Positions 1,795 through 59,492 are shown, numbered from the stretch's first letter. The stretch: DNA of 64,000 nt from Rebecca billardiae RCC1528 (GCA_965240325.2 OZ251222.1:372001-436000), one strand, 5' to 3'. Program-made: numbers and translations. The notes: generated from the letters alone by a model not told the origin.

Positions 1795-3891
1795 ATGGCG
1801 GACGTCGACGAGGCCGACGAGTTCACGCCTCTCACAGGCCGTGCTGACGCCCATTCACGACGAAAGCAGCGCGGCATCGGGCGGTGGGCTATCGGCACAT
1901 GCGGGGTCTTGTCCCTGACCGCCGCGCTCCTGGCCATCGTCGATCCCTGGGCCACCGTGTGGCGCGCGGGCGGCCGTGCGGTGCGGGAGGCGGTCACGCC
2001 AACCGCGGCGGCAGTGCTGCCTGCCGAGCGTGCCGCGTCGGCGCAGCCGTGCGACCTCGGCCTGGAGACGTTGTTAGACGAGGCTGAACGCGCCCGCGGC
2101 GGCTGCGCCTGGCGCTACCCCCGCGCGTGGCCCTCGCCCACGGGCCGGTCGTGCAAGCAGTCGTTCGTCAAGTGGCAGCAGCGCGACGCAGCGCGGCGCG
2201 CGCGCGTCGCCTTCGACGCGGAGCGCTGGGTCGTGTACACAGGCAACTGCACGTTCCCTCCGCTCACCACCGTGTGGCCGGCGTGCACGGACCCGCGGTA
2301 CGCCGCGCTCCGCGCGCCCGCCGACGAGGAGGCGCTCTCTGCCGTGGAGCAATGGCGCGTGCGGCGCTACCTCGGCGCCCTCGGCACACTCCTCGAGCCG
2401 CCTCGGACGAACGGCACGCGGGGCGGCACGGGGCTGAGGCTGCCCGTCCGCGTGGCGGTCCCCCGCTCCATGCGCCGCTGTGCCTCCGCGCCGGGCGTCG
2501 TGTGCGAGTCAGACATGCTGCTGGCGCACTCGCTCGCGGACGCGCGCGCGTGCGCCGCGCGCGCGGCGAACCGCGCGGTGAGGCTGCGGTATGCGCGCGA
2601 CCTGGCGTGCCTGCTCGAGGAGCAGCACGCGCGGCGCTCGGGCTCGGCGGGCTCGCGGCGGTGGATGTGGATGGCCGGGGACCGGACGGCCGGCGCCACC
2701 GTCCCGCTCCTCTGCAAGACGCGCGACATCGCCGCGCCCGGCCTCACCGTGCTCGCGCCCGTGATGCACGCGCGCCACGCGACTGAGCTGAGGCGCGTCG
2801 TGCAGCTCGAGCGGCTGCGCGCGCGCCCGTTCCTCGAGCGCGAGCGGTGCGCGGTGTGGCGCGGGGCGACGACGGGAAGCGTGCGCGGCTGGGACGACCG
2901 CGGGCCCCCGAACCCACGCCGCGCGCTCGTCGAGCGCTGGGCCGCCGCCTCTGCGCCGGACACCGCCGCCGGCTCGAGCACCAACCGCACGGCGCGCCCC
3001 GGCGCCGCGAGCGCGCCGCGCGAGTCCGACGACACCGGCGGCGTGCGCGTGGATGTGGGCTACTCGAAGCTGGTGCTGCCGCCCAGCGTGGGCGCGGAGC
3101 TGCGCGCGGCGCACGCGCGGCACGTGCGCGCGCCGCGCTCGCTCGAGTCGATGAGCGCGTGCCGCTACCTCCTCTCCGTCGAGGGGAACGACGTGGCGAC
3201 CAACCTCAAGTGGACCCTCTTCACGGAGAGCGCCGTGCTGATGGCGCCGCCGCGGAAGGAGTCGTGGCTGCTCGAGGCGGCGCTGGCGCCGTGGGTGCAC
3301 TACGTGCCGATCAGGCGCGACGCCGCCGACCTGGGCGCGAAGCTGCGCTGGTGCGAGGCCCACCCGCGCCACGCGCGCCAGATCGCGCGCGCCGGCCGCA
3401 CGCACGTCCTCCGCGTGCTCGGAGGCGGCCTCGAGTCGGAGCGGCGCGTGCGGCGCGCGGTGCTCGCGGCCGTCGCGCGCGCGGTCGAGTACGTCGCGGA
3501 GGAGGGGGGCGGCGCGGCGGGCGGCGAGGATGGCGTTCCGCCCGACGGCGCGTGCGCGTGGACAGCCGCCGATCGCGAGCAGTACCGCGCGGACCTCGAC
3601 CGGCTGCTCCGCAGCGCCGATCCAGCGCTCCAGCGGCACGTGGACGAGCACGCGGCGCGCGCGACGCGAGAGTTGTCCGCGGCGCGCCGGCAGGCGTTCG
3701 GCGCACCGTCGCCGCTCGGCGCGCGCGACAGCCGGTCGGCCGCGCCCGCGGGCGAGGAGGGCACCCGGCCAAGCGCCATCAGCACGTCGTCGTCGTCGCA
3801 GGCAGCAGCAGCAGCGGCCTTCGAACGCCTGGCCCACGCCCACTTTGCCGCCTCCGCCCGGGAGGCCTTCCTCGCAGGGAACGACTATTAA
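1795..3891 (+). CDS. Glycosyltransferase family 90 (CAP10-like), type II membrane protein
   Basis: N-terminal TM; motifs AVWRGATTG, RYLLSVEGNDVATNLKW, LAPWVHYVPI, DLGAKLRWC. Confidence 0.9.
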   Translation: MADVDEADEFTPLTGRADAHSRRKQRGIGRWAIGTCGVLSLTAALLAIVDPWATVWRAGGRAVREAVTPTAAAVLPAERAASAQPCDLGLETLLDEAERARGGCAWRYPRAWPSPTGRSCKQSFVKWQQRDAARRARVAFDAERWVVYTGNCTFPPLTTVWPACTDPRYAALRAPADEEALSAVEQWRVRRYLGALGTLLEPPRTNGTRGGTGLRLPVRVAVPRSMRRCASAPGVVCESDMLLAHSLADARACAARAANRAVRLRYARDLACLLEEQHARRSGSAGSRRWMWMAGDRTAGATVPLLCKTRDIAAPGLTVLAPVMHARHATELRRVVQLERLRARPFLERERCAVWRGATTGSVRGWDDRGPPNPRRALVERWAAASAPDTAAGSSTNRTARPGAASAPRESDDTGGVRVDVGYSKLVLPPSVGAELRAAHARHVRAPRSLESMSACRYLLSVEGNDVATNLKWTLFTESAVLMAPPRKESWLLEAALAPWVHYVPIRRDAADLGAKLRWCEAHPRHARQIARAGRTHVLRVLGGGLESERRVRRAVLAAVARAVEYVAEEGGGAAGGEDGVPPDGACAWTAADREQYRADLDRLLRSADPALQRHVDEHAARATRELSAARRQAFGAPSPLGARDSRSAAPAGEEGTRPSAISTSSSSQAAAAAAFERLAHAHFAASAREAFLAGNDY

Positions 3892-4047
3892 TGGTTTAAG
3901 ATGACGCCGCCGCCGATCATCATGATTGATATATATGACTATACGACAGCATGCGCATTTGCGCTGCTGACGGCGTCGATGGCAGGCGGCATGTTATTAC
4001 ACTAAACTACGACTCGCTACAGGCATGCTGCATGCAGCCACTGCAGC

Positions 4048-5661
4048 TTACGGTGGCGATGACAATGCCGATGCGGCTGTGATGGGGCGGCCCGTCACGT
4101 CTGCTGCGCTCGTCTTGGCCTTGTCCGTGAGGGCGAGCGTAAGCGGCGTACTGGGTCCGCCTGTCACTCCCACGGCTGCGGCTGCCCTCGCCTTGGCCGC
4201 GGCCTTGGCTGCTGTCTTGCTATCGGCTTTGCCCGTGGCTGCGTGCGGCAGCGAGGGCACGGCAGCCGCTCCGCCCGCGCCGCGTGCCGCCGCGTGGCGA
4301 GTCTGCTGTTTCGGATGGGCGTGGCAGCGGAACTCGTCAATCAGCTGCGGCGTGCGCTTGTAGCCGTCCGTCAGGAGCTTGGTCGTGGCCAGATCGCGCG
4401 CGCGGGTTTTCGCCGGATCGACCGCCGCCAGCGCCCTCGCCGACGCGCGCGTGCTGCGCGTGACGCCGCACCCCCCACGGGCGGCCCGAGCGGATGGGAG
4501 CGCGCGGCCGCGCGCCGAGCTGAGCGCCGAGCCGTTGCGCGGCGTGCACGCGGCCAGCGCACGCGCCTCGCGATCCATGCGGCGGAGGCGTCGCTCCCAG
4601 CTCAGCCTGGCGAGCAGCTCCCTCTCCTCGAGCATCTGCCGCCCGCGCGGCTTCGTCACGTTCCGCTTGGCGAAGAGGGCCGGCGCCTCGCCGCGCCGCA
4701 CCGCCGTGCTGTAGCACGCGTGCATCGGCCCAAAGTCGTGGTGGAAGACGGCGAAGATCTTGTCCGGCCTGAGTGCGTTGTACGCGAGCTTGGGCACGCC
4801 GCTGCGCATGTCGATGGGCTTGAAGAGCGTCGAGCGGTAGTGGAAGTGCAGCGCCTTGCCCAGCCCCTTGCGCCACGGCCAGTTGGCCGAGCCGAGCATC
4901 GCCAGGTAGTTGTACTCGCGTGGCAGCAGGCTGACGCACTCGGCAAAGAAGGTGGTGAAGAAGGCCTGCGCCGCGCGCCGCGCGGGCGGTGAGCCGGGCG
5001 CGCGCCGACGCGCGCGCGCGCACGCCCAGCGGCGCGCGGCGCGCATGCGGCCGCGCGCGCGTGCCGCCAGCCACACCTGGTCGCTGATCAGCAGCACGTC
5101 TGAGCCCTCGAGCCGCTTGAGCGCGCCCGTGATCCGCGCGTACATCTGCTCGCTGGGGTGGACGACGAGCACGCCCGTGTTGCACGTGTCCACCGCCTCG
5201 ATGCGCACGCAGTGCACGTGCGGCTGGCTGAGCGCGCCCGGCCTCACAGCGAAGCGCGGGTGCGCAAAGTCGAGCGGCCGCAGCGCGATGATGTCCACGT
5301 CCAGGAAGAGGATGCGCTCGTACTGCGTGAGGCCCCACAGCCGGTAGATGCCGAACGTGCGGAGGTAGCGCATCAGGATCGCGTCGTTCTCGGCGATCGC
5401 CTCGCGGAAGCGCGGGTGCCCCCGGCTGGGGTGCTCGATGCAGCTGGGCACGAGCGTGATGTTGGACGTGAAATTGGACGCCGCGCACGCCTGCAGCTGC
5501 GTGATCACTGACACGTCCACCTCGCAGTGGATGATGACGATGTCGACATTGGGGCTCTTCTCGTACACGCGCGCCACGCTGTGCAGCCACGCGAGCAGCA
5601 ATGGCAGGTACTTGACGCCCGAGATGTACGTCGCAACGGCGAAGAGCTTGCCGCCCGCCAT
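4048..5661 (-). CDS. Glycosyltransferase family 8 (glycogenin/galactinol synthase-like); probable 111-bp in-frame intron 4966-5076
   Basis: Motifs LWGLTQYERILFLDVD, NTGVLVVHPS, SDQ|AFF, LPREYN; a GT..AG segment interrupts the DQxF motif. Confidence 0.8.
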   Translation of the reverse strand: MAGGKLFAVATYISGVKYLPLLLAWLHSVARVYEKSPNVDIVIIHCEVDVSVITQLQACAASNFTSNITLVPSCIEHPSRGHPRFREAIAENDAILMRYLRTFGIYRLWGLTQYERILFLDVDIIALRPLDFAHPRFAVRPGALSQPHVHCVRIEAVDTCNTGVLVVHPSEQMYARITGALKRLEGSDVLLISDQVWLAARARGRMRAARRWACARARRRAPGSPPARRAAQAFFTTFFAECVSLLPREYNYLAMLGSANWPWRKGLGKALHFHYRSTLFKPIDMRSGVPKLAYNALRPDKIFAVFHHDFGPMHACYSTAVRRGEAPALFAKRNVTKPRGRQMLEERELLARLSWERRLRRMDREARALAACTPRNGSALSSARGRALPSARAARGGCGVTRSTRASARALAAVDPAKTRARDLATTKLLTDGYKRTPQLIDEFRCHAHPKQQTRHAAARGAGGAAAVPSLPHAATGKADSKTAAKAAAKARAAAAVGVTGGPSTPLTLALTDKAKTSAADVTGRPITAASALSSPP

Positions 5662-16324: not shown

Positions 16325-16446
<122 letters not shown>

Positions 16447-17611: not shown

Positions 17612-17946
<335 letters not shown>

Positions 17947-30400: not shown

Positions 30401-30658
30401 GCGCTCATCGTGATGGACAATCAGATGCCGCGGATGTCGGGCATCCTCGCGACGCGCGCGCTCCGCCGCGGCGGCTTCCGCGGCCTCATCATCGGCATGA
30501 CGGGCGACCCGCAGGGCTCGCCCGACCGCGACGAGTTCGAGGCGGCTGGCCTGGACGCGTGCCTCGACAAGGACGCGCACGGCATCGAGAGCATCCTCAC
30601 CGTGCTGCGCTCGTGCGCGCTCATGCCGGGCGACAACGCCGAGGCGCGGCAGCCGTGA
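27418..30658 (+). CDS. Membrane-bound hybrid sensor histidine kinase (multi-TM, HisKA, HATPase, receiver); intron 28846-28981
   Basis: H-box MHDLRSPL, N-box NNGVSNA|LKFT, DDTGVG, GGTGLGLSI; receiver HVEDD, MDNQMPRMSG, GMTG, LDK. Confidence 0.93.
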
Positions 30659-30830
30659 GGGCGGCTGGCAGGGAGCCAGCCGGTTTCGCCGAGCTGTTTT
30701 CGCGCATTCGCCGTGATGCAGCATGCTCGGAGGCCCGCCAACGGATGACGGGATACTACATGCAAACTGTACAGAAATCAGAATTATAATAATAAATATT
30801 AATTATTTTTCATATATATATATATATATA

Positions 30831-32705
30831 ACAAGCTGATCAACAGGCTCGGCTCGGCGCACAAGCAGGGGCTGTGGGTGCTCACGCACTACTCGACCTC
30901 GACGAAGCTCGACTACTTCCTCCGCCACATCGAGCCCGACGCCACCGCCGAGGCGTGTGAGCGGTTTGACGCTATCATCCTCCGGCAGGCCGGCGTCGCG
31001 CTAGGCTTCCCCACCGACGACCAGCTCGACGACATCATGCTGCAGCGGCTCCGCCTGCCCGTCCGCCTCGGGGGGCTCGCCCTGCGCTCGGCGGCGCAGC
31101 GGGCACCCGCCGCCTTCTGGGCGGGGGCCCACGCCGCTGTTCCCGCGTTCCTCGACCGCCACGCCCCCATGCAGGGCGGCGTCGCCGTGCACGGCGTCCT
31201 CGAGCGCGACTCCATCGTCGCGCGCGTGGGCCGCGACGCGTTCGTGGACATGCGCGCCGCCGGATGGCGCCAGTTTCTGCAGTCGGGCTCGGCGCTCGGG
31301 CGGACGCTCGCGACCATCTGGGAGCGCCTCCAGCTCGCCGAGCAGGAGGCGCCAGCTGTGCCCAACCGGCAGCCTTACTGCGTGCTCCACCTCCCGGCGG
31401 GTCAGGTGGCACCCACTGCACGCCGGGCTGTGGACGGCACCATCTACTACAGCCTCGCCAAGGACATCACGGAGGACGTCGAGAACACCCACGGCTGGCT
31501 CCTGCGGCGGCAGCTCAGCTCTCTCTCGCGGGACGACCGCCGTGTGCACCTCATCCAGAACGTGGACCGTGCCTCACTCGCGTTCGTGGGCGCGCTCCCG
31601 ATCGGCAGCGCGGCGGTCCACCACCAGGGTGAGTGGCTCGAGATCGCGGCGCGCGCGCTCGGGATCCCCAGCCCGGTCTGCGCGCCGCTGGCCCAGGCCG
31701 GGGCGTACGTGCCCACGCGCTCGGGTCCTGGCATCCGGGTGGACGCGTACGGCGACGCGCTCCTCAGCGCGTCCGGCCGCAACGCGCTCCCCGGCGACCA
31801 CGTCGCACGCTACCGGCACGACCCGGTGATCCGCGTGCTGGCGGGGTTCTTCCGCACGTACGCCGGTGTGTACGCCGTGCCGGAGGACACCTGGATCTTC
31901 GGCTCGGTGCACGCCCAGTCCACCGCCCAGGCGCAGGCGGTGCTCGGCACGGACCGCAAGCGCGTGCCGGTGGTGGACCTGAGTGCCGAGGTGCACGGCA
32001 ACTGTACCCTGTTCGAGGTCAAGACCATCTCGCTGAGCCAGTCGCGCTACAGGGTGAGCGACGGCCGCAACGGTGCGGTGCGCCACCGCGCGGAACTCGT
32101 CCCGCGCGAGCGGCGCAAGCAGCTGCAGCTCCTCGACCGCGAGGTCTACGGCACGCTTGAGGGCCAGGTGGGCCCATACGAGGCGCGGCTCGACACCTTC
32201 CCCGCGATCGTCCCGATTGTCGTGGGGGCGTTCGGCGAGTGGAGCGCGGAGGTGGACCTCACCCTCAAGAAGATCGCCAAGATGGGGCGGGACACGTGGC
32301 GCGCGCGCCTCAGCGCGCCCTCGCGCCCCGCCGCCGAGCGCGCGCTGCTCGGCACCATGCGGCGCGAGCTGGGCATGCGCTGCCTGCGTGGCCAGGCCAA
32401 GATGCTCATCGCCCGCGCGCGCATGGCGCACGTGCGCCCGGGGGCACGCGCCCGCGGGGGCGCTGCATACGACGACTACTTCGAGACGACGGCTGACGAC
32501 GCGTGGCACCGCGACCACCGCGGTGGCGCGTGCGCGTCGACGCCAGACGGTGCGTCGAGCTTCCGCTCGGCGATGGAGTGATGGGCGACTATGAGGGGGG
32601 GGGACGACGGCGAGGAGCGCTGATCCTGGTGTTTGTCTCTGCTGCTCGATCTGCTGCTACAGCTTGCTGACTCTGACGCCTGCCCGTTGCATACCACGTC
32701 GTTAA
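30831..32705 (+). mobile_element. 5'-truncated CRE/SLACS-like non-LTR retrotransposon inserted in (TA)n; ORF to 32581 covers the post-RT region and an RLE endonuclease
   Basis: ORF is open from the junction. Motifs QGLWVLTHY..KLDYFLR, LPVRLGGLALRS, DAYGD..PGD..RHD, D..LFEVKT (PD-(D/E)xK), VVGAFGEW. TA repeats on both sides; 3' end GCATACCACGTCGTTAA. Confidence 0.85.
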
Positions 32706-33459
32706 TATATATAACACAGCTGAGCCAGTTTAACGATATCGGGATATGAATCATACTAATATACCCTAGGGTATAAGTATGACATATCGTTAAACTCATT
32801 ATTGGCCGGGCGGTACGACGAATCCGAACGGTAATGGTATATCAGGTATGTAATCCGAATCGTCGGCTGAATATGATACGTGCGCTGACGATGATTAAAT
32901 ATGACGAGTGGTCGTCTCAGCTGTCACGGCAGCCCCGCGGCCGCGGGGGCGCAGTCGTCGATACAGTCGTAACATCAGAGTCAGACAGTCATCAGACTCA
33001 GACAGTGCCGACCCCGAGCAGAGCAGGCACATAATCATCAGTGCTGCTGCCTGCGGCTGCTGACGATATTGATGCTCGTCACATGTAACTGAACTAGTGA
33101 ATTGCGACGACATGGGATAGCGACAGTAGTGCCGTTCACATCACATTGACCGATTAACTCGTCGTCGGACTCAGGAGCAGTACGTCTTAGGATACTTCGT
33201 CATCAGCATTATTGATTCGATCTGCTGATGACTACGAGCATTATATATTACGACGCGAACGACGAACGGCCTTTCAGCGTGGCGCAGTTTAACAGCAGAG
33301 CTGACAGTTCAGTCAGAGATAGTCATGGACGACGAGCAGCAGGCGACTCCGACGGACGCTGTGCGTCGAGGAGTGCTGCTTCGACTGCTGGCGGCTGGCT
33401 GACTGCTGCCATCGCGACCGGGCCAGACGGCACGCACCTCCTAGCTAGTAAGCCGGCCG

Positions 33460-35310
33460 CTAGGACAACGAGCGCCGCCCGACGGTCGGGAGCACCGAGC
33501 CGATGATGTTGCTCAGCCGCTGCTCGACGTCCGTCGGCCGAGCGGTGCCGCCGCCGGCGGGCAGCCCATCCGGCCGAGGGACGCCCGCGCCGCCCGCGCC
33601 GCCGGCGGGCACCGTCCCCACCTCGAGCGCGCCCAGCTCGGCAGTCGCCTTGGACGCCTCGCGCCGCGCGGCGAAGAGCTCGATGCTGCGCGCGAGACGG
33701 CGGCGCACGCCGATCGGCCCGACGCCCATCTCCTTGAGGTCGTCGTACGTGAGGGCGCCGAGCACGTCGAAGCCGACGCCGTGCTCGCGCAGCGTGCGCG
33801 CGCACTCGGCGCAGCCGACGCCCTCGAGCCACGCCTCGAGGCTGCGGCAGTCGGGCGGGGCGTACAGCGCGTCGCGCGCGAGCGACGCGCTCAGCGCATC
33901 TGCCTTCACGCTGAGCGCGAGCGCGCGTGCACGGCGCGCGTCGGTCGGCTTGGCGAGCATCTTGAGCGAGCGCATCGCGTGCTCGTCCAGCTGCTGCAGG
34001 TCGAGCGCCGTCGTGTACCCCGCCTCCTGCGCCGCCTCGCAGTAGTCGCCCAGCCCCCACAGCAGCAGCTGCCGGCCGGCCTCGGAGGCGTTGGCCGCGT
34101 CGCGGATGCGGTCGGCGGGCCGGCTCGCGGCAAAGCGCGAGACAGCGCGCTGCAAGTCGGGCAGCGTGAGCGTGACCAGGTCCGCGCCGCGCGCGCCCAC
34201 CGTCACGCGCGCGTTCAGCTCGTCGCTCGCCCACTGGAAGAGGTTGTCCACCAGCCGGCCGTTGTACCTCGAGCGAAGCTTCTCCGTGGTGCCCTTCTCA
34301 ATCACGTCGCGCGCGCCGCCCTTCGCGTCCGCGTCCAGCTTCCACCCGGCCGAGTTGAGCTTGATCTGCAGGATGCGCACCAGGTCGTCCACGCCGTAGT
34401 CGTCGAAGTGGAAGCGGTACTTGACGCGGGACTCGAGGCCCGGGTTGTACGTCATGAACTGGTCCATCTCCCGGCGGTACCCGGCGAAAATGAAGGTGAC
34501 CGACTTGGGGCCCGAGTCGTTCATCACCTTCATCATCTCGTCGATCGCCTCGCCTGAGAAATCGGACTGGCCGCGCATGAGCGAGGCGGTGAGCTGGTAC
34601 GCCTCGTCGACGAAGAGCACGCCGCCGCGCGCCTCCCTGATGCGCTTGGCCGTCTTGGCGCCCGTCTGGTTCACGTACCCCGCGACGAGGTCGCCCTTCT
34701 GCACCTCGACCACGTGGTCCTTGGACGAGACGCCCAGCCGCTTGTACAGCCGAGCGACCAGCCGCGCGATCGACGTCTTACCCGTGCCCGGGTTGCCGGT
34801 CATGAGGCAGTGGCGGATGGGCGCGAGCACGGTCTGCCCCTCGTTGCGCCGCACGATGTCTAGCGCGAGCTGCTTGCACAGCTTGCGCATCTGCCCCTTC
34901 ACCGTCTCCATCCCGACGAGTCGACTCAGGTCCTCCTCCATCGCGCGCTCGGCCTCGACCAGCTCCGCCTCCGTGAGCGGCTGCCGATCGGCGTCGGCGT
35001 CGTCGTCGTCGTCGTCGCTGTCGTCCGCCGTGCCCTTCCCGCCGCCGCTCCCCGCGCGCGCCGCGCGCGGCATGCCTCCGCCCGCTGTCTGCTTCTTCAG
35101 GTACTCGGCGCGTTGCAAGTACTCAAACACCTTGGCCCGAATCGTCTCGACGACCGAGGGCGCCTTCTCGTACTTGAGCGCGATCTGAAACGTCTCGATG
35201 GCCTGCACATACTTGGCCAGCGCGAGCTCGAACTCACCGCCGTTGTCCGCCGCCACCGCCTCGTTCGCCAGGCCGATGGCCTTCTCGCGCAGGTCGACGC
35301 TGCTCGACAT
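33460..35310 (-). CDS. MIT domain + CbbX/SpoVK-type AAA+ ATPase + two SAM domains
   Basis: Vps4-like MIT (AVAADNGGEF...ALKYEK...YLQRAEYLK); GNPGTGKT, DLVAGYVNQT, GGVLFVDEAYQL, AGY..NPGLESR; SAM (WLEGVG...LTYDDLKEMGVGPIGVRRRL). Confidence 0.9.
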   Translation of the reverse strand: MSSSVDLREKAIGLANEAVAADNGGEFELALAKYVQAIETFQIALKYEKAPSVVETIRAKVFEYLQRAEYLKKQTAGGGMPRAARAGSGGGKGTADDSDDDDDDADADRQPLTEAELVEAERAMEEDLSRLVGMETVKGQMRKLCKQLALDIVRRNEGQTVLAPIRHCLMTGNPGTGKTSIARLVARLYKRLGVSSKDHVVEVQKGDLVAGYVNQTGAKTAKRIREARGGVLFVDEAYQLTASLMRGQSDFSGEAIDEMMKVMNDSGPKSVTFIFAGYRREMDQFMTYNPGLESRVKYRFHFDDYGVDDLVRILQIKLNSAGWKLDADAKGGARDVIEKGTTEKLRSRYNGRLVDNLFQWASDELNARVTVGARGADLVTLTLPDLQRAVSRFAASRPADRIRDAANASEAGRQLLLWGLGDYCEAAQEAGYTTALDLQQLDEHAMRSLKMLAKPTDARRARALALSVKADALSASLARDALYAPPDCRSLEAWLEGVGCAECARTLREHGVGFDVLGALTYDDLKEMGVGPIGVRRRLARSIELFAARREASKATAELGALEVGTVPAGGAGGAGVPRPDGLPAGGGTARPTDVEQRLSNIIGSVLPTVGRRSLS

Positions 35311-55709: not shown

Positions 55710-55743
<34 letters not shown>
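55710..55743. repeat. (TA)n microsatellite
   Basis: Read directly from the sequence. Confidence 0.95.
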
Positions 55744-55745
<2 letters not shown>

Positions 55746-57069
55746 CCCTTGGCGACGTCGCGATGGTGCCCGCCGACGCGGCCCCCGCCCCGCTCGCTGG
55801 CCCCGGGTGCGAAGCACACGGGGCTGGTGGGGCGGGGGCCGCATGCCTGTGGTGCTCCCCCATGCTTATCTTCGGCAATCTCCTGCGCGCTCGTAGGCCT
55901 CGCGGCACTCCTGCTTGGCTGCAACATGACTACGACTAGTTCTACGACCTCTACGACCACTTCTTCCTCCCTTCGTGCGCACGCGCTGGCCCTCGCAGGG
56001 CCAGTCGGACGCGGCGTGGGTGGCGGCACGAGCGCGGCCAGCGCGCTCGGCCTGCCTGCCTGCGAGCCTCCATGGATGCGTGCGCGTGGGGCCGGGTTCT
56101 GCCACCGTTCATTGCCAACAGCAACTGGGCACGGACCTGCGACGAGGCATGCCGCCTTTCCCCACGCGCCCTTCAGGTTGTCCCGGCTCAGCCGGTCGCT
56201 TCGGCGGCCGATGGGCCCTCGGCCGGCTCGATCCCCCTTCCCGGGGACTCGGTGGGGCACCGCCAGGAGTGTCTCGCGGCGGGCGGGCCGAGCGCGCGGG
56301 TCGCCAGCTGACCCCGCGACGTTCGATTCGACTGCTCTGCGCTGGCACGTGCACGCGGAGATCAACCACACGCAGCGGGTCCGGGATAGGCACTGGCACC
56401 CTCTTTCTCCAGCCGGCCGCCGGCTGCATCGCCTCGGGGGGCGATGCAGCAGGTGGACGCCGCTGCACCCATCTGGCCCTTGGCGCCGGCCTCCACCGTG
56501 CCCCTCGCTCCACCCTAGGTGGGGCAGGGGGTGCGGGGTGTGACGAGCCCAGGGGCCAGGTTCCCCAGCATCAAGCACTGCATCTGCAGCAGCCCGCCGG
56601 CGGGCCGGGCTGCGACATCGACTACCACCTCACATCTGCTTCATCGCCCAGAGCGCGCTAGGCGGCGCGCTCACTCTCCAAGCCCCTCTTCTGCAGCTGC
56701 GCGCCGCTTGGCCGGCGCGCGGCGACGCGCACTACGACCTCATCCTCATCCAGGCGCCCACGCGGGCGCACGGGGGCGACAGCCGCGGCTGCCGCTTGCC
56801 GGGGCTGCTCGCCGCTAGGTCGGCGGGCGGCGACATCGACTACGACCTCACCCTCATCCAAGTGCTCCGGAAGGCGCTCGGCCGCGGCGGCATCTGCCGT
56901 CGCCGCCGTGTGCCCCAGGCCGAGGCGGTGCTCCATCCCGGCCCCGCTCCCGTAGGGGGGCAGGGCTGCGGGTGGCGCACTGTCTGACCTGGTCGGAAGG
57001 CGCGGACGCATTCTATGTGTCCGTTGCACTCTTGAGCCTGACGCTTGTCCGATGCTGCCACGTCGTTAA
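55744..57069 (+). mobile_element. Putative non-autonomous retroelement (~1.3 kb) with a CRE-like 3' tail, between TA tracts
   Basis: Ends ctgacgcttgtccgatgctgccacgtcgttaa, versus ctgacgcctgcccgttgcataccacgtcgttaa in the CRE-like element; a second truncated copy follows; 5' boundary uncertain. Confidence 0.65.
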
Positions 57070-57075
57070 ATATAT

Positions 57076-59135
<2,060 letters not shown>

Positions 59136-59154
59136 ATATATATATATATATATA

Positions 59155-59268
59155 TTAACGACGTGGTATGTATCATATATATATTTTAACGACGTGGTAT
59201 GTATCATATATATATATATGTGTGTATCCATACCACGTCGTTAATATATATATTAACGACGTGGTATG
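59155..59268. repeat. Four 16-nt copies of the retroelement tail (CATACCACGTCGTTAA) in TA repeats, both orientations
   Basis: 59155-59170 (-), 59186-59201 (-), 59229-59244 (+), 59253-59268 (-). Confidence 0.92.
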
Positions 59269-59492
59269 GATGATACACACATATATATATATATACTGCT
59301 ACCGATTTTACCGCTCCAAACAGGAGGTAAACTTGAACTTCCACTCAGATAAATTAACACACCACGCCCAAGAGCTGAGTGAATCAGAGCGATCACAAAG
59401 TCTACATTATTGCACCCGCCACGGTACAATAGATATCGTGCGCCCCCCGCCCGCGCTCCCCCCGCAGTTCTTCAGGCGGCGCCTTCATCACG

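Follow-up and report, generated by a model that had tools for sequence, protein, structure and literature searches.

In a 64,000-nt stretch of the Rebecca billardiae RCC1528 genome (GCA_965240325.2, OZ251222.1:372001-436000; hereafter the window, with positions counted from its first letter), positions 30831-32705 hold a coding remnant wedged into TA repeats; the G+C content across the window is 68%. The question raised by this locus is what kind of element the remnant comes from, and whether its place in TA repeats reflects a true target preference. The answer that appears probable, at roughly 85%, is that it belongs to a recently active, site-specific long interspersed nuclear element (LINE) of the restriction-like endonuclease (RLE) type, the window copy being a dead, 5′-truncated insertion into a TA microsatellite. 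The interval represents, on the plus strand, the final 1875 nt of a retrotransposon lacking long terminal repeats (non-LTR) and ~4.7 kb long, comprising 583 codons, a 124-nt 3′ untranslated region (3′UTR) and the tail CCACGTCGTTAA. Its 5′ junction adjoins without gap a (TA)9.5 run (30812-30830), the upstream remainder of the target microsatellite, while the TA-type sequence found directly 3′ of the tail (TATATATAA, 32706-32714) is either a remnant of the target or the start of a duplication. The remaining open reading frame (ORF; 30830-32581 on the plus strand, with 583 codons at 30830-32578 and the stop codon at 32579-32581) corresponds to residues 936-1518 of a 1518-aa protein and contains the end of the reverse transcriptase (RT) thumb, a linker, the nuclease domain and C-terminal helices; the 3′UTR follows at 32582-32705, with the terminal 12-mer at 32694-32705. 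Because this ORF has no start codon or promoter of its own, the window copy is a dead fragment. The interest thus lies in the whole family, of which the window copy is just one 5′-truncated insertion.

The structure of the complete element can be read from its other copies in the 72-Mb assembly, where a search with the window ORF gave 75 scored matches among 312 candidates. The window copy corresponds, at 99.9% identity (locus L036), to positions 2825-4699 of the 4699-nt reference copy of this family, hereafter family A. Five loci (L031-L034 and L038) carry an identical 1522-codon open frame (100% identity), which gives 1518 aa from the first ATG. Six copies are complete (L061-L066), and the five that were fully measured span 4668-4671 nt from ATG to tail. 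The full element, of ~4.7 kb and devoid of terminal repeats, consists of a 5′UTR of ~15-19 nt, a single ORF of 1518 aa and a 124-nt 3′UTR ending in the tail. The encoded protein begins with an orphan N-terminal region that includes an RGG-rich stretch, followed by the RT, an alpha-helical linker and a C-terminal PD-(D/E)XK restriction-like endonuclease. Complete copies begin near (T)AATGGCCGACTAGG-ATG, preceded by a few variable extra bases, and TA-type sequence lies on both sides in four of the five complete copies in which both ends are visible. The exception, L066, shows TATAT downstream and, upstream, a short ATATATAT stretch set off by nine extra bases. Sequence identity reaches 99.9-100% in five of the complete copies, while L066 matches the reference at 99.0%. 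Since several full-length copies share 99.9-100% identity, the family-A element has moved recently.

The assignment of the ORF to the RLE-type LINEs depends on sensitive methods. Pfam yields no match for the truncated window ORF and, for the full-length protein, no apurinic endonuclease-like (APE; Exo_endo_phos) domain and only a sub-threshold RVT_1 match (residues 668-876, E 0.014). A phmmer search of the PDB with the single protein returns low-complexity RGG matches only. A profile of the seven closest sequences, by contrast, matches R2 proteins in the PDB over the RT region (E 8.6e-4). Predicted structures extend this similarity to the whole C-terminal part. The AlphaFold model of residues 560-1518 has a mean predicted local distance difference test score (pLDDT) of 65, with the RT core and the nuclease at 70-90, and Foldseek aligns this RT-to-end model with R2Tg, R2Bm and R2Pm over ~850 columns (E 9e-13 to 2e-11). 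LINE-1 ORF2p comes next (4e-7), followed by group II intron RTs, and telomerase and retron RTs also rank behind. The nuclease domain (residues 1190-1480; 31592-32464, plus strand), modelled separately from an 86-sequence alignment, reaches a pLDDT of 91.8, and its top six Foldseek matches in the PDB are all R2 proteins. An independent aligner, VIA, likewise places the R2Tg C-terminus first (Z 14.3, 210 residues aligned) and gives Z 12.4 for R2Bm, ahead of Prp8 (Z 6.1) and then other PD-(D/E)XK nucleases.

The conserved residues of the alignment include the key positions of the nuclease. D1318 (31976-31978) and K1333 (32021-32023) are invariant in the 86 sequences, and G1401 is present in all 86; H1265 is found in 85 of 86 and D/N1266 in 80 of 86 (these two, part of the RHD motif, lie at ~31817-31822), E/D1331 in 85 of 86 (32015-32017), E1405 in 80 of 86 and E1287 in 70 of 84. 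Since predicted fold, architecture and conserved residues agree, the view that the ORF encodes an RLE-type LINE protein is supported. The RT and RLE homology proposed from the sequence only is therefore present, even if it is visible through profile and fold matches only, and the truncated ORF, the R2-type nuclease fold and the flanking TA runs together bear out the description of a 5′-truncated RLE-type element in TA repeats. The ORF might instead stem from another class of retroelement (Penelope-like, DIRS/Ngaro or retron-like) that carries a PD-(D/E)XK domain, as the weak RVT_1 match, an RT active site that reads GHDD instead of Y/FxDD, and the absence of the CCHC knuckle of RLE LINEs could suggest. 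Such an origin is extremely improbable, given that the RT-linker-nuclease region aligns with R2 proteins ahead of every other RT class, that the nuclease domain matches that of R2 at Z 14.3, and that the nearest CCHC-bearing RT relatives display the RH, PD and K..KY motifs described for R2 (PMC4838377). The copies themselves speak for the same assignment. An RT of non-LTR type, the lack of terminal repeats and a 5′-truncation series with a common 3′ end and short duplications are the marks of non-LTR elements; a C-terminal PD-(D/E)XK nuclease without an N-terminal APE, together with insertion into one repeated target, are those of the RLE group.

The terminal 12-mer provides a measure of the target preference. 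It occurs nine times in the window, at 17774(-), 32694(+), 57058(+), 57091(+), 59124(+), 59155(-), 59186(-), 59233(+) and 59253(-), against 0.12 occurrences expected from shuffled sequences (none of 100 shuffles reaches nine), and all nine tails adjoin TA runs, in both orientations. The recurrence of the tail beside TA repeats, on either strand, had been noted by the sequence-only reading and stands at nine occurrences in all; most of the positions it listed are accurate, the exceptions being 57076 and 59229, which are the starts of short fragments whose tails begin at 57091 and 59233. Genome-wide, there are 788 tails (399 forward and 389 reverse, which extends insertion in both orientations to the whole genome), against 3 matches for a reversed control pattern. 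At least 8 A/T bases come directly after 477 of the 788. TATAT directly follows the tail in 347 cases and ATATA in 248, together 595 of 788 (75%), against a background of 1.0% of window positions at which TATAT or ATATA comes next; TA runs of at least 8 nt cover 1.1% of the window. Most genomic copies do therefore adjoin TA, and the proposed specificity for TA tracts is upheld. The association is also precise. Among the loci examined, 55 of 58 distinct tails have a TA-type run on their 3′ side, in fixed phase: family A reads ...GCATACCACGTCGTTAA followed by TATA (TTAA/TATA), and a second, non-coding family that shares the 3′ end, family B, reads ...GCTGCCACGTCGTTAAA followed by TATA (TTAAA/TATA). 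The target repeat is the dinucleotide, and a few tail flanks in the genome read ATAAATAA.

The 5′ junctions and the target duplications indicate when the TA sequence came to be there. In 36 copies with an intact 3′ end, the 5′ truncation points are scattered from position 1 to position 4658, and in 28 of these copies the 14 nt upstream of the 5′ junction contain 6 nt of TA or more. Where the flanks are unique, duplications can be recognised: TATATGAGTGAC at L021, a lone (TA)3 site, TATATGTGTGTGT at L040 and TATATTACGTC at L026. They are 11-13 bp long (a clean 12 bp at L021), and each opens with TATAT directly after the tail. These features point to active targeting by target-primed reverse transcription. 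The TA runs could alternatively be a simple-repeat 3′ tail that the element makes itself at random sites, as other LINEs do. Every intact 3′ end does carry a few TA-type bases in fixed phase, as a templated or slipped (TA)n would, and some copies show just 5-7 nt of TA before unique DNA begins. This explanation is nonetheless unlikely: in 28 of the 36 copies, and whatever the truncation point, TA stands immediately before the 5′ junction, and long TA runs exist without any tail (16327-16444 in the window, for example). The duplications, moreover, include TATAT on both sides at L021, L040 and L026, so the TA was present before insertion, which counts against a self-made tail.

A different objection accepts that the TA predates the element and makes the association passive, with copies inserting at random and persisting only in TA-rich islands, because selection removes the others from a gene-dense genome. 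Intergenic space is indeed short. Passive survival is yet very unlikely to account for a junction that is base-precise and phase-fixed, that is already found in the youngest, 100%-identical copies, and that is seen, with a clean duplication of 12 bp, at a solitary (TA)3; TA runs also contain fragments of 12-30 nt, from which little harm would be expected at any location. The idea that TA islands serve the element as a safe haven is plausible and fits the data, TA runs making up ~1% of the window. The companion suggestion that the element may expand TA tracts fares less evenly: the 11-13-bp duplications initiated by TATAT and a possible ~140-bp duplication at 17615-17944 lend it weak support, but many insertions interrupt TA tracts.

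Altogether, these observations lead to a model of insertion by target-primed reverse transcription. The family-A protein would bind the 3′ end of its own RNA, in which the tail may be the recognised part, and its nuclease would nick one strand at a TATAT site. The TA-ended 3′-OH of the DNA could then pair with (UA)n read through at the 3′ end of the RNA and so prime reverse transcription by microhomology. Cutting of the second strand ~11-13 bp away would produce a duplication that opens with TATAT; the duplications seen fit such a first nick, leaving a TA-ended 3′-OH, followed by a second cut at that distance. Reverse transcription would often stop early, which would give the 5′-truncated series down to fragments of 12-30 nt. 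Because TA is its own reverse complement, insertions occur in both orientations. Long TA microsatellites, which offer many sites, collect most copies, although (TA)3 is sufficient.

This machinery may not serve family A only. Family B is represented in the window by an element of ~1.32 kb (55747-57070, plus strand) that ends in ...GCTGCCACGTCGTTAAA and has a TA run upstream (55710-55743), and by a 116-nt 3′ module ending in the tail (59021-59136, plus strand). It is non-coding, shows no similarity to the family-A protein in tblastn, and has only the last ~38 nt in common with family A. Family B appears to ride on the family-A element, and the data fit recognition of the 3′ terminal RNA of both families by the family-A protein, because the genome-wide tail counts are similar (248 in the B phase and 347 in the A phase) and hybrid A/B ends exist (L014 and L018). 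In an Rfam scan of a full-length copy, nothing but TA-repeat noise appeared, and neither a ribozyme nor an R2 RNA element was detected. Two further observations concern family B in the window. A second 5′-truncated B-like stretch starts at 57247, directly after a (TA)72 run. An abundant 321-nt repeat (58700-59020; at least 39 near-identical copies and 535 candidates genome-wide) ends exactly where the 116-nt module starts, with no TA between them.

Several points weigh against the reading of family A as a recently active, TA-specific LINE of the RLE type. As said above, the RT is recognised by Pfam below threshold only. Some 5-8% of the tails have no adjoining TA (L015, L030, L046 and L054). 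Duplications are invisible inside long TA tracts, and the figure of 11-13 bp comes from few copies; the nick site and the priming step are read from junctions only. Folding of the 3′ ends of A, B and hybrid copies shows no shared RNA structure. Finally, a scan of metagenome DNA gave one full relative, L067, which is degenerate and ends at a 274-bp satellite; the other loci match in the RT only. As no TA repeat marks the end of L067, the only relative found at the DNA level in the metagenomes, targeting of TA may be a property of this host's lineage only.

From the known RLE LINEs, the family differs in several respects. The first is the CCHC knuckle between RT and nuclease, of which no trace remains in the form of conserved Cys or His residues at the four ligand positions in the 86 family sequences. 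In metagenome lineages whose RT is 24-28% identical to that of the family, the motif CxCG..VD..G.HGLSC precedes RH, PD, D-x-T/A and K..KY. When the family is set against these RT neighbours, only VD..G is kept (D1240 in 81 and G1243 in 84 of 86 sequences), and all four ligand positions hold other residues. The degenerate knuckle (residues 1226-1262, ...VDAYGDALLSAS...LPGD; 31700-31810, plus strand) retains a small hairpin in the predicted model. The earlier proposal that the Cys knuckle is replaced (DAYGD...PGD) thus holds across the whole family. The second departure concerns the catalytic lysine, which, invariant in all 86 sequences, lies in strand 3 as part of a classical E-x-K, the K..KY motif being absent from the family. 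The CCHC-bearing neighbours show the reverse arrangement, with no lysine in strand 3 (D-x-T/A) and K..KY in helix 2, and the R2 nuclease has been described in the same terms, with RH and PD motifs, a K..KY catalytic-helix motif and no strand-3 lysine (PMC4838377). The third is the RT active site, GHDD, in which the usual Y/F position is aromatic in only 11 of 63 family sequences.

The N-terminal part of the protein also stands apart. Among 206 family proteins, none is related to it over the first ~380-400 residues, and the ESM Atlas, which for the RT-RLE part returned uninformative unnamed clusters only, held no usable match for residues 1-260. Pfam identified no domain in this part, neither a zinc finger nor a Myb, although a very divergent one is still possible in this region, which lies outside the folded model. 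Because the CCHC knuckle, a defining feature of the RLE group, was looked for and is absent, the element is filed in no named clade. Nor does the best match to R2 place it, since no other RLE LINE among the matches has a solved structure.

The comparison with R2 (R2Bm, R2Tg) is nevertheless the most detailed. In both, a single ORF joins the RT through a helical linker to a PD-(D/E)XK nuclease at the C-terminus. Whether the whole protein or the nuclease alone is compared, the best fold matches are to R2, whose RH motif, PD aspartate and second acidic residue have aligned counterparts in the family. Both also share 5′ truncation, site-specific target-primed insertion and, as far as family A is concerned presumably, recognition of the 3′UTR. 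R2 differs in its target, the 28S rRNA gene as opposed to (TA)n, and in its zinc finger(s)/Myb, CCHC knuckle and K..KY; none of these was found here, where an ExK lysine and GHDD are present instead. The CRE clade (CRE1/2, SLACS and CZAR) comprises site-specific, RLE-bearing elements with a single ORF in protists. Its target is the spliced-leader gene, in contrast to (TA)n here, and the missing CCHC argues against simple membership of the family in CRE, to which the element had first been likened. CRE is itself listed among the mostly target-specific RLE clades (PMC4640811).

Insertion of non-LTR elements into microsatellites has precedents. Dong, of the R4 clade, is specific for (TAA)n, Togen, related to NeSL, for (TG)n, and some HERO elements are also microsatellite-specific; outside these, Kibi (TC)n, Koshi (TTC)n, Waldo (ACAY)n and Mino (AC)n are known (PMC3812793, PMC4640811). 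Dong, Togen and the HERO elements resemble the present family in encoding an RLE and in inserting into microsatellites, but the motif here is (TA)n. TA microsatellites are targeted by Micron miniature inverted-repeat transposable elements and by MuTAnT Mutator-like elements (PMC3812793, PMC4486113), which are DNA transposons of unrelated sequence and wholly different mechanism. In the literature searched, TA targets are reported for DNA transposons only and no (TA)n-specific non-LTR element was found, nor any description of a knuckle-less RLE family or of pavlovophyte transposable elements, with Repbase Reports and most subscription journals lying outside the search, so that absence is unproven. 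The same literature gave no description of knuckle loss for the R4, NeSL and HERO clades.

The family extends well beyond this genome. An exhaustive profile search of public metagenomes, clustered at 50% identity, returned 1958 cluster representatives at E<=1e-30 and 9665 at E<=1e-10. The ten representatives that were looked up are all unnamed metagenome or metatranscriptome proteins from contigs of 4-7 kb, and the protein collection searched holds no exact match to the element protein or to a host protein. LINE diversity in marine protists thus seems under-described, with a family of ~2000 clusters in public metagenomes that none of the sources consulted names. A tentative and rather doubtful extension of the main reading is that these proteins form a separate, clade-level lineage of RLE LINEs, widespread in marine protists, which would have lost the knuckle, would use a classical PD-ExK nuclease and would mostly lack the aromatic RT residue. 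In this host, the lineage would have specialised on TA, with priming by (UA)n/TA microhomology and with the upstream TA tract acting as a TATA-like promoter. That last role, if true, would explain transcription from the first base despite a 5′UTR of 15-19 nt.

The relatives differ from family A in ways of their own. A word-based search brought up eight. In two of them, P0005 and P0006 (~2000 aa), the RT is preceded by an RNase H-like domain (Pfam RVT_3), an unusual place for RNase H in a LINE protein. Metagenome contigs L069-L084 hold intact LINE ORFs of ~1000-1650 aa with an RT, a canonical CCHC knuckle, RH, PD and K..KY, and no APE; these are unnamed RLE lineages and the nearest CCHC-bearing RT neighbours of the family. 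In one of them, L073, an OTU-like protease match lies upstream of the RT.

Research on site-specific RLE LINEs, above all R2, treats them as models for target-primed reverse transcription and as tools for placing DNA at defined sites. Family A offers a naturally active relative with a very simple palindromic target, no knuckle, no N-terminal zinc-finger or Myb modules found, and a lysine placed differently. By these differences, it tests which components of the R2 design are truly indispensable. In a host genome of 68% GC, where TA islands are rare, the insertions help to explain why mobile elements pile up in those islands. These insertions also go on interrupting TA microsatellites, parts of which are sometimes duplicated in the process.

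Two groups of family-A copies show further arrangements. At ~1713800-1714600 of G000:C1, 5′-truncated family-A copies (L023-L026) form a head-to-tail array with the same 11 bp, TATATTACGTC, between them, which suggests either repeated insertion at one site or tandem amplification. At L035, L051, L056 and L057, family-A copies adjoin at their 5′ junctions one shared foreign repeat end, ...GCGCTATCCTCAGAAAAGTTTAATCATA(TA), which looks like a further family of mobile elements with its terminus against TA repeats.

Within the window, the 1875-nt copy lies between two TA runs and between two convergent host genes. The upstream one is a response-regulator-like ORF that ends at 30658. The downstream one, on the opposite strand, encodes an AAA+ protein (gene end at 33460). 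This protein shares 69% identity with one of Diacronema lutheri and ~52% with those of other haptophytes, which makes the host a pavlovophyte haptophyte alga distinct from D. lutheri. Further tails in the window belong to short fragments. A 27-nt family-A tail fragment (57076-57102, plus strand) is followed by (TA)72, and four tail fragments of ~16-20 nt, in both orientations and separated by short TA runs, cluster at 59155-59272 (tails at 59155-, 59186-, 59233+ and 59253-). A 29-nt family-A fragment on the minus strand (17774-17802), an extreme 5′ truncation, sits inside a (TA)n(TG)n tract. Within 17615-17944, this fragment has TA(CA)17-18(TA)52-62 on each side, flanks that may represent a target duplication of ~140 bp or a later duplication of the microsatellite.

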